Assembly (NCBI RefSeq): GCF_000002075.1
Contig: NW_004797549.1
Span: 435,608 to 499,607, forward strand
Source: Aplysia californica
Taxonomy: Eukaryota
DNA length: 64,000 bases
Direction: 5' to 3'
The notes under the pieces: generated by a model
What the model was told of the DNA's origin: nothing
What the model saw: only the letters and a program-made list of their open reading frames with translations
Database searches by the model: none
Program-made: the position numbers and the translations under genes
Shown: positions 45,901-48,900 of the stretch, piece by piece
Layout of the letters: each line of letters starts with the position of its first letter
How positions within the stretch are numbered: the first letter of the stretch is position 1

Positions 45901-48900
45901 AAGCCTTTAAAAATACCGTCGATGTATTCGAGGATCATTTACCGGCCCGAAAAAGGTACTAGTAGAAAGATCAGTTAATTTTCTATTAAAATAAATTCAT
46001 CGGCGTAAAATTATTTTGCATCAATTCTTCCGTCAAACTCGGAAAGCATGCGACACCCCAGGCGGTAGGGCTGGGCAATGAGTCGCTATAGGAAAAATCC
46101 GGATAATATGTTAGTGCGGCTCTTTGGTAAATAATGTTATGAACCGATTAGACAAATGGGTTAAAACCACTTTGACAAACGAGTTAGCACCCCTCCAACA
46201 AATGGGTGCTCCCAATTCGCCAAACTGGTCAGGAGAGAGAATTAGGAGTCTGAATTCGGATAATGTACTTATTGAGGATTATCCGATTATCCGGATATTT
46301 ATCCGGGTTTTGCCCTCCTCTACCAGGCGGGGAGCACTCTGTACACTACAGTATAGAGCAGATTCGCTCGCGGCTGGGGCTGGTGCAGTGCTGGCTAGGT
46401 CAACGCTTGGTGTTTTTGTCGAAATAACGACAGATCATTGTGTTTGAGGCGATAAAATACTGATTTGTAATTATCTTAGTCTTGAAAAAAATTAGGCTTC
46501 ATGATATCTATATTATAGTGATTGTACTTTGTTAATGTGGAAATGTTTGGTGAATATGGTACTTTTTTATCTGTCAAACATGGGATTGCAGTCAGTTAGC
46601 GACTTTAGCATTATTTTATAATATTTAAAACAGCTGCCTTTTTCTTTAAAGTTGACACACAGGTAAAAGAATGGTACTAAGATTCTCAGGAGACGTAGGC
46701 CTTTCATATGGAACAGATAAAGTTGGCATTCAGCTACTTTGAAAATTTTGTTTCTAATACCTTCTGATTCCTCCCTAGTTTGGGTATGGCATCGATGATT
46801 TTCCTCCTTTTTCACTTCTTGTCATTAACATCACTGATATAAGGACGCTTGTTTTTACTATGTATTTTAAATTTATGCAATGTGCCAAAGTCTATTGTCA
46901 AAATCAAGTTTAATTTCTTTGGCAGTAGTGAAATTGTGCATGTTGCAGACTCTTTCATAGGAAGATCTGGCCTTTTCTTTAACACCTTAACGACCAGCCA
47001 TCCTGTGACTGGTATGTGGTATGTAAATGAAGACAATGACTGCTGACTCAACTTTTTGAGCATATCCATGGGAGAGTGTGATTGGGATACTGCTAGGTGG
47101 AGACAAGTAATGTGTATAAGCTGTCACTTGAGTGTCAGTGGAAAAAGGCCCTCCCCCCAAAAAAAAATCCTAATTGTGTGGGATTTTGTACTATGGCTGC
47201 TCGTTTGTGACCTTGTATCTCATCTAAGCTAATTGCAAGGCTGTACACTTTTCCTTTTGCTTACAATATGGGTGTGTTTGTGGTAGAGGGAGAAATTCGT
47301 TTCTGTTCCTTAGTCAGGCTCATGTGGTTACGTGTCATTTCTTTTCAGCTGTGATTCTCCTAGAGGGAGGAAATGATCTGGATTTGACCATACTGGACAA
47401 CCCGCTCCTGGAGCCAGGAGAACGGTCGCGTCAGAACTCGGAGACGGTCACCTCTCCCATCAAAACGTAAGATGGCTTTCTTTGCTTATATTATTGTTAT
47501 GTTATGTATGCTCGAAGATTGTTGTATAAGATGGGTCACTTCTTAATTTTAGAAACAAGACAAAACTTCTGCCTTGGGGTCGATGCGTGTACAAAAATAC
47601 TTAAGTATTTTTAGACAGAGATGCGGCTTGCACAAGAATTGAAGAGAAAAAAATCAGTGAATGTTTGATGAGAAGGATTGGTATTTATCGATCTAAGTAC
47701 AAAACAAAGTATTCTAAGCTGTGTTGGTGGTGTACAGAAATACTTAAGTATTTTTAGACCGAGCTGCAGCTTGCAAAAGAATTTAAAGCGAAAAACAACG
47801 AATGTTTGACGAGATGGGTTGCTTTTTATCAGTTTGAGTACAATACAAAATATTCTAAGCTCTGTAGGTGGTGCCATATGATTTTAAAAAGAGCACTGGT
47901 TGCTGTGTATAGGAAAAAGGTTATTTTATAAATGGGAAAAAAGGAACAAAGGTGGTTCTAAAAAAATATCTTTTTGAGAAATGAAGCTTGTCCCAGACAT
48001 CTATATTAAAACATGTAAGTTGTCGAGAACACTTTCTCAAGGAGTGGCGCATCTTGTATACAGTATTTGATTTGCTCCCATTGCCATTTGGTCAGCATTG
48101 TCTTTTTTGTTTCCTTTGATGTGTACAATTAAGTTTATGCTGATTGTGTTCTGATAATACCTTTTTTTATCAGAGTGTAAAACCATGGTCAGTTCCACCT
48201 TGTGCTACCATTTTGTGTTAGCTCTGTGTTGTCTGTGCTGAGTGTACAGTCTCTTCTCAATCAGGGTACCAATATTAATTTCTACCAGTGGATGATTAAT
48301 AAAGTTGATCTTATCCTTGCTGTCATAAAATCTATATCTTTACATTAACCTTTTTATAAACTTAAATGTGGGCATCGCTTTGATTACTGATGGCTGATCA
48401 AAGTACAAACTAAAATGAATATGGTTCCTTTAAAGTGTAAGAGAAATTTTCATGATTTCAATAGTTGAGCTGGGAAGCTATGATGAATACGATGCTTTTG
48501 TAAAAGTGGAGTGGTTTGCTTTAATCTGTGTTACTTGTTTCTTTGTTTGCAAGTTGAGTCTTGTGTGTTTGACTCCAGTTCAGGTGTATTTTGGGTATCT
48601 TTTTGTACCGCAGTGTGTACGCGGCTGCTGCAGTTCATACTTGTCTTGTTTTTAATTTGGCCCAGGTGTTCTTTTCTTTCTGATTTGGATGCTTTGATTT
48701 CATGGTGATGTTTGTTGTCATTTCTGATTTTGATTTCAGTGACAAGAAAAAGTCTGATGATGAAGACGGAGAAATAAGTGACTCAAAGTAATTATCTGTT
48801 GTGTTTTGTGTGCATTGGGGAGTCTTTAGCATTGTTAGATATTCTCTTGCATCTCCCCCCCCAGCAAAAATTTTCAATCCTTTGATAGCGACTAAGATAC

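Follow-up and report, generated by a model that had tools for sequence, protein, structure and literature searches.

A small in-frame exon carrying a candidate ARS2-recruitment motif within the ARS2 gene of Aplysia californica and related gastropods

The window analysed here is a stretch of 64,000 nucleotides of the Aplysia californica genome (contig NW_004797549.1, positions 435,608 to 499,607 of the forward strand). Its forward strand contains the coding region of ARS2/SRRT, which runs from an ATG at 33796 to 64000 and extends past the window end (database protein P0135). The spliced gene model was searched exon by exon, the full-length sequences being those of database proteins. In the exon-wise profile search both PF12066 (N-terminal) and PF04959 (C-terminal) were matched above the curated cut-offs, and a search of the PDB returned the ARS2 structure 6F7S with an E value of 2e-24. 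ARS2 occurs as one copy in the 927-Mb, 4332-contig assembly that was searched, and the proteins closest to P0135 in a protein search are those of euthyneuran gastropods.

The linker that follows the N-terminal domain starts in an exon at 47349-47466 (+), which encodes the end of helix 5 and closes with a phase-2 donor. Next come a 48-nt phase 2-2 cassette exon at 48740-48787 (+), documented by the sequence, by the RNA contig X24 and by one X22 read, a second 48-nt phase 2-2 cassette exon at 49591-49638 (+), seen in this species only and in no gene model that lacks the first, and, downstream at 51966-52032 (+), a linker exon whose acceptor is in phase 2. The following linker exon (52844-52943, +) encodes a conserved helix and opens at a tandem CAGCAG acceptor (window 52841-52846), its start at 52844 or 52847 giving a one-Gln difference among models; the second AG is the one used in the RNA contig. 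The C-terminal foot, which forms the effector surface, is encoded by the exon at 63189-63344 (+), as judged from PF04959 and from alignment to ARS2 in the PDB.

The first cassette exon has a pyrimidine tract leading to TTTCAG on its 5' side and GTAATT on its 3' side, and its positions 48762-48776 (+) encode EDGEI, a canonical ARS2-recruitment motif (ARM) at residues 314-318 of P0135 that fits [ED][ED]GE[ILV]; the exon is referred to below as the ARM exon. An earlier note on this DNA had described a 48-nt phase 2-2 exon with good splice sites and an EDGEI in the disordered linker of ARS2, and the sequence bears this out. The same holds for its claim that skipping of the exon preserves the frame, since the adjoining introns (47467-48739, 48788-49590 and 49639-51965) are phase 2 throughout. 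EDGEI is separated by about 32 residues from the last structured helix before it and by about 165 from the RRM after it, and the AlphaFold2 models predict the region to be disordered (pLDDT about 41-47, secondary structure absent). The central unstructured insertion of human ARS2 (about 269-410) is likewise acidic, of low complexity and placed between helix 5 and the RRM, and its function has been described as unknown (PMC5923425).

The published ARM consensus is [ED][ED]GE[ILV], and mutations at E, D, E and I have been reported to abolish ARS2 binding, while exchange of I for L is tolerated (PMC9402713). The ARS2 foot is given by ELM as the receptor for the motif class LIG_ARS2_EDGEI_1. The partner ARMs of Red1, ZFC3H1, ZC3H4, ZC3H18, FLASH, NCBP3 and PHAX share with the gastropod motif an EDGEI/EDGEL core, acidic and Ser-rich flanks, a disordered setting and conservation as an island (PMC9402713, PMC10767929, bioRxiv 2023.07.25.550453), and the closest context resemblances are to Red1 EDGEISEDD and FLASH EEGEIRSDSE. 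Those ARMs reside on partner proteins, whereas the gastropod candidate lies in ARS2 itself, as a single copy on its own exon and in one clade. Matches to [DE][DE]GE[ILV] arise by chance in 0.5% of shuffles of the linker of this species, and within the clade the chance occurrence per linker estimated by shuffling is about 0.5-1.4%; the stronger argument against chance is that members of the clade share the motif at one and the same place. The motif passes every sequence test that was run as a canonical ARM and, the defining criterion being binding, it is called here a candidate ARM.

The motif is found at the equivalent place in Biomphalaria, Bulinus, Physella, Lymnaea, three Elysia, Plakobranchus, one Arion paralogue and three unnamed transcript contigs. 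The named members all belong to Tectipleura, in a sampling without nudibranchs. In six gastropod genomes the ARM exon is discrete, in phase 2-2 and 45, 48 or 57 nt in length. Across 13 sequences E-D-G-E-[I/L]-[S/N]-D-S is invariant, most flanking columns carry 4-7 residues, and the 8-mer is among the three most conserved of the 159-residue linker. The codons are more variable than the residues they encode: each of the four Gly codons occurs, and the closing I/L is encoded by ATA, TTA or CTC. Both the invariance and the exchange of I for L agree with the published rules (PMC9402713). The motif forms a conserved island among orthologues, within Tectipleura only. The earlier note had pointed to lophotrochozoan orthologues as the place to look, and conservation in relatives was indeed found, but in one gastropod clade and not in lophotrochozoans at large. 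At this position the motif is missing from Patella, Haliotis, caenogastropods, bivalves and octopods, and nearly all other sampled animals lack it there as well. To see whether skipped isoforms chosen as representatives could account for this absence, all isoforms listed for Patella, oysters, mussels, scallops, Mercenaria, Dreissena and Octopus were checked, and none carries the motif.

A segment of this kind may also be conserved for another reason, such as a different partner, a phosphosite by a basic patch or a purine-rich splice enhancer, in which case the match to an ARM would be incidental. Other stretches of the linker are equally conserved, some species have CK2-type sites in the form of SDDE/TDGE, and the final Ser adjoins the donor site. 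Each of the six DNA sequences uses GAA for both Glu residues, and a splice-enhancer constraint may therefore contribute. Outside the clade 8 of 170 linkers contain the motif, at unrelated places, a count matched or beaten by 10 of 59 permutations of the motif; on this count we rejected the idea that ARS2 linkers are generally prone to evolve ARMs, and it also fits an incidental match. Yet the sacoglossans lack the upstream Ser/Thr, the ARM-defining Gly and aliphatic residue are among the invariant positions despite synonymous variation, and the receptor that ELM gives for this motif class is the ARS2 foot. An incidental match is, in our judgement, quite unlikely.

The gain of the ARM exon, within an old phase-2 intron, falls on the stem lineage of the clade (clade support 100/100): the outgroups lack the motif, and in Batillaria the same phase-2 intron follows the equivalent upstream exon with the ARM exon absent and the motif not found within it. 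The earlier note had also suggested an origin by exon duplication, from the likeness of the exon start to that of the exon at 51966. Aligned in register, the two exons of this species agree at 20 of 30 nt, with p 0.002-0.007 by codon shuffling and p 0.17 by local alignment. Across genomes, the 5' end agrees in register with the next exon at 19-21 of 30 nt for this species and a pair of sacoglossans (p 0.001-0.006) and at 13 of 30 nt for two pond snails (p 0.4-0.5). The likeness is thus real in register but modest and confined to three of five genomes, and no homologous intron flanks were seen between the ARM exon and exon 51966; duplication of the latter is a plausible source on the sequence likeness. 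For the second 48-nt exon, which was found in no relative, segmental duplication as a source was unsupported (p 0.25). Apart from the splice sites, no conserved intronic element was found near the ARM exon, p<0.05 being reached in 3 of 20 comparisons.

Land slugs and snails have a further arrangement. Arion has two ARS2 proteins, one with the motif (P0136, paralogue B) and one without, and in the tree the motif-bearing paralogue is sister to the pair formed by Arion-A and Bradybaena (support 99/97). The corresponding 7.3-kb intron of Bradybaena yielded no motif exon or remnant (best p 0.02 of five tries). It is a reasonable inference that the forms with and without the motif have been divided between the Arion/Bradybaena paralogues. 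Absence from the Bradybaena/Arion-A gene and, at this position, from nearly all other sampled animals means that the motif is dispensable. P0136 is also the faster-evolving paralogue and ends in a C-terminal GNLLK without the terminal DIF, which the motif-less paralogue retains.

Use of the ARM exon was followed in four runs (X21-X24) mapped on 47200-53100, with the proviso that contigs lose minor forms. In contig 1 of X24, a run taken as RNA by presumption although the contig itself is spliced, 47368-47466 and 52847-52943 are spaced by 163 letters, that is 48+48+67, and the bin depths across all exons give one common depth of 11.3; spacing and uniform depth together indicate that none of the three small exons is left out. 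The bin depths of X22 agree with a single 101-nt read over the joints 48787>49591 and 49638>51966. In the raw runs X21-X23 the depth over these exons is near zero and transcribed intronic repeats dominate, and at this coverage no skip joint around the ARM exon was seen in the reads of the four runs. The intronic repeats at 50943-51336 and 52322-52912 are matched by RNA reads in the thousands, of which many end in poly(A), as expected of abundant transcribed families, and the repeat at 52322-52912 has more copies in other ARS2 introns.

Among the NCBI models for this species, those of 947, 946, 940 and 916 aa have both small exons, those of 931 and 930 aa have the ARM exon only, and those of 915 and 914 aa have neither; the ARM exon is present in P0268 and P0270 and missing from P0266 and P0271. 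In Biomphalaria glabrata, model X4 lacks exactly the orthologous 15 residues, which X1-X3 and X5 contain. These skipped forms are predicted NCBI gene models, and they come from two species. Every RNA-derived contig seen (X24, P0137, P0281, P0282) includes the ARM exon, from which inclusion seems to be the default state. What the earlier note had called an optional exon is spliced in, as the X24 contig and the one X22 read show, its skipping appearing in the NCBI models only, and 'optional' is best read as skipped now and then.

These observations bear on whether the exon is regulated at all. It could be effectively constitutive, with cis binding as proposed below and the skipped models representing low-level noise at a weak donor; this account shares the binding with the explanation that we favour and differs from it in regulation alone. 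It fits the inclusion in all RNA-derived contigs seen and in 5 of 5 Physella models, and no skip read was seen, at near-zero coverage. On the other hand, skipped models occur in two distant species, and six genomes have kept both the frame symmetry and a donor, GTAAAT or GTAATT, without G at +5. We regard a constitutive exon as possible rather than probable.

With the human numbering anchored on S717 (PMC5923425), the equivalents of human K719, K722 and K734 are encoded at 63262, 63271 and 63307, corresponding to K787, K790 and K802 of P0135, and these receptor lysines are conserved in every motif-bearing protein checked. A polymer estimate with a persistence length of 4 Å, in which the tether-to-foot distance was a free parameter tried from 40 to 80 Å, placed the local concentration of the motif at about 1200, 200, 25 and 2 µM at 40, 50, 60 and 70 Å, respectively, and at no more than 2 µM at 70-80 Å. 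The Kd values reported for partner ARMs range from 0.16 to 9 µM (bioRxiv 2023.07.25.550453). AlphaFold2 docked the motif in neither of two single-chain models, one near full-length and one starting just before the motif, which were run without a positive control, and the motif had a pLDDT below 50 in both; the outcome lends cis docking no support and speaks weakly against it.

The same results are relevant to a true ARM that acts in trans, joining one ARS2 to the foot of another in dimers, chains or nuclear foci. The 32-residue tether may fall short of a foot at the tip of the projecting leg (PMC5923425), cis docking was predicted in neither model, Arion has motif-bearing and motif-less paralogues side by side, and all of the conservation evidence fits equally well. 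A single ARM with a micromolar Kd would nevertheless make a weak intermolecular contact amid many competitors, and ARM-mediated ARS2 oligomers were not reported in the literature searched. We consider joining in trans improbable.

With a canonical ARM and the sole copy of its receptor on the same chain, cis competition would be the simplest use of the motif. The motif may accordingly serve as a lineage-specific built-in competitor, a cis ligand, at the ARS2 effector site, and we put the chance of this reading at about even. It would have begun when a Tectipleura ancestor gained a small symmetric exon in the old phase-2 intron of ARS2, within which selection would have retained the ARM. The ARM would fold back on the basic foot of its own molecule and take the site of the orthologues of PHAX, NCBP3, FLASH, ZFC3H1, ZC3H4 and ZC3H18, raising the apparent Kd of all motif-bearing partners by one factor, so that partner binding would then rely on second contacts or on co-tethering on capped RNA. 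The earlier note had foreseen a displacement of exosome-adaptor partners, but a tethered competitor at a mutually exclusive site would lower all motif-bearing partners equally, PHAX, NCBP3 and FLASH included; selectivity among partners could come only through second contacts, for example the ZC3H18 knuckle or direct CBC binding. The usual isoform would then be a damped ARS2 and the skipped isoform an undamped one, with skipping as the switch. Combining the built-in competitor with regulated splicing makes for a more tentative proposal. Similarly doubtful is the complete scenario, in which ARS2 is autoinhibited by its own ARM, regulated skipping of the exon turns the effector site of CBC-ARS2 from damped to open or back depending on tissue or condition, and a gene duplication in land slugs and snails fixed the two splice forms as paralogues.

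Human ARS2 bound a FLASH peptide with 5.1 µM with the linker and 3.8 µM without it (PMC5923425), and this near-equal affinity indicates that human ARS2 is not autoinhibited by its linker. No vertebrate ARS2 linker of the set examined contains the motif, the human linker lying outside that scan. A literature search, limited to the library searched, returned no report of a self-ARM in any ARS2, and a self-carried ARM in ARS2 therefore appears to be unreported. The cases of intramolecular pseudo-ligand autoinhibition described for the PRPF40A WW domains (PMC11079029) and PEX13 SH3-FxxxF (bioRxiv 2022.12.19.520972) resemble gastropod ARS2 in that the chain bears the motif of its own partners; they differ in that another domain and motif are involved and autoinhibition is reported from experiment, while the gastropod element is removable by splicing and read from the sequence. 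Splicing likewise alters ARS2 function in mammals, where nuclear and cytoplasmic isoforms have been described (bioRxiv 2021.07.08.451683), but the event described there is the splicing of intron 5 with a cytoplasmic switch, as opposed to a linker exon that carries a binding motif. The sorting of nuclear RNA poses the open problem of how ARS2 selects from several partners that share one site, for which an ARS2 whose built-in competitor is removed in nature by splicing would provide a plus/minus pair, suited to testing whether site occupancy tunes RNA fate. Animals used as models in neurobiology and a snail that hosts a parasite belong to the clade, the breadth being limited to this one group of gastropods.

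Several other features were observed in the gene. The intron at 62339-63188 is of the AT-AC (U12) type, with the donor ATATCCTT, the branch CCTTGAC and the acceptor AC, and the database protein reads in frame through it; U12-type donor or acceptor sites at the matching place in seven other gastropod loci point to an old minor intron. In P0272 of this species and P0253 of Biomphalaria (X5) the conserved C-terminal CBC-binding tail is replaced, at about the same point, by an unrelated tail, which represents either intron read-through or a real CBC-blind isoform. Toward the N-terminus, a 21-nt microexon at about 37969-37989 encodes RGWRGNP and so extends the N-terminal tail by an RG repeat. It is a cassette conserved in six other loci, its inclusion varies among the models for this species and for Biomphalaria and Physella, and Arion and Bradybaena have protein pairs that differ by 7 aa, as would result from the same microexon.
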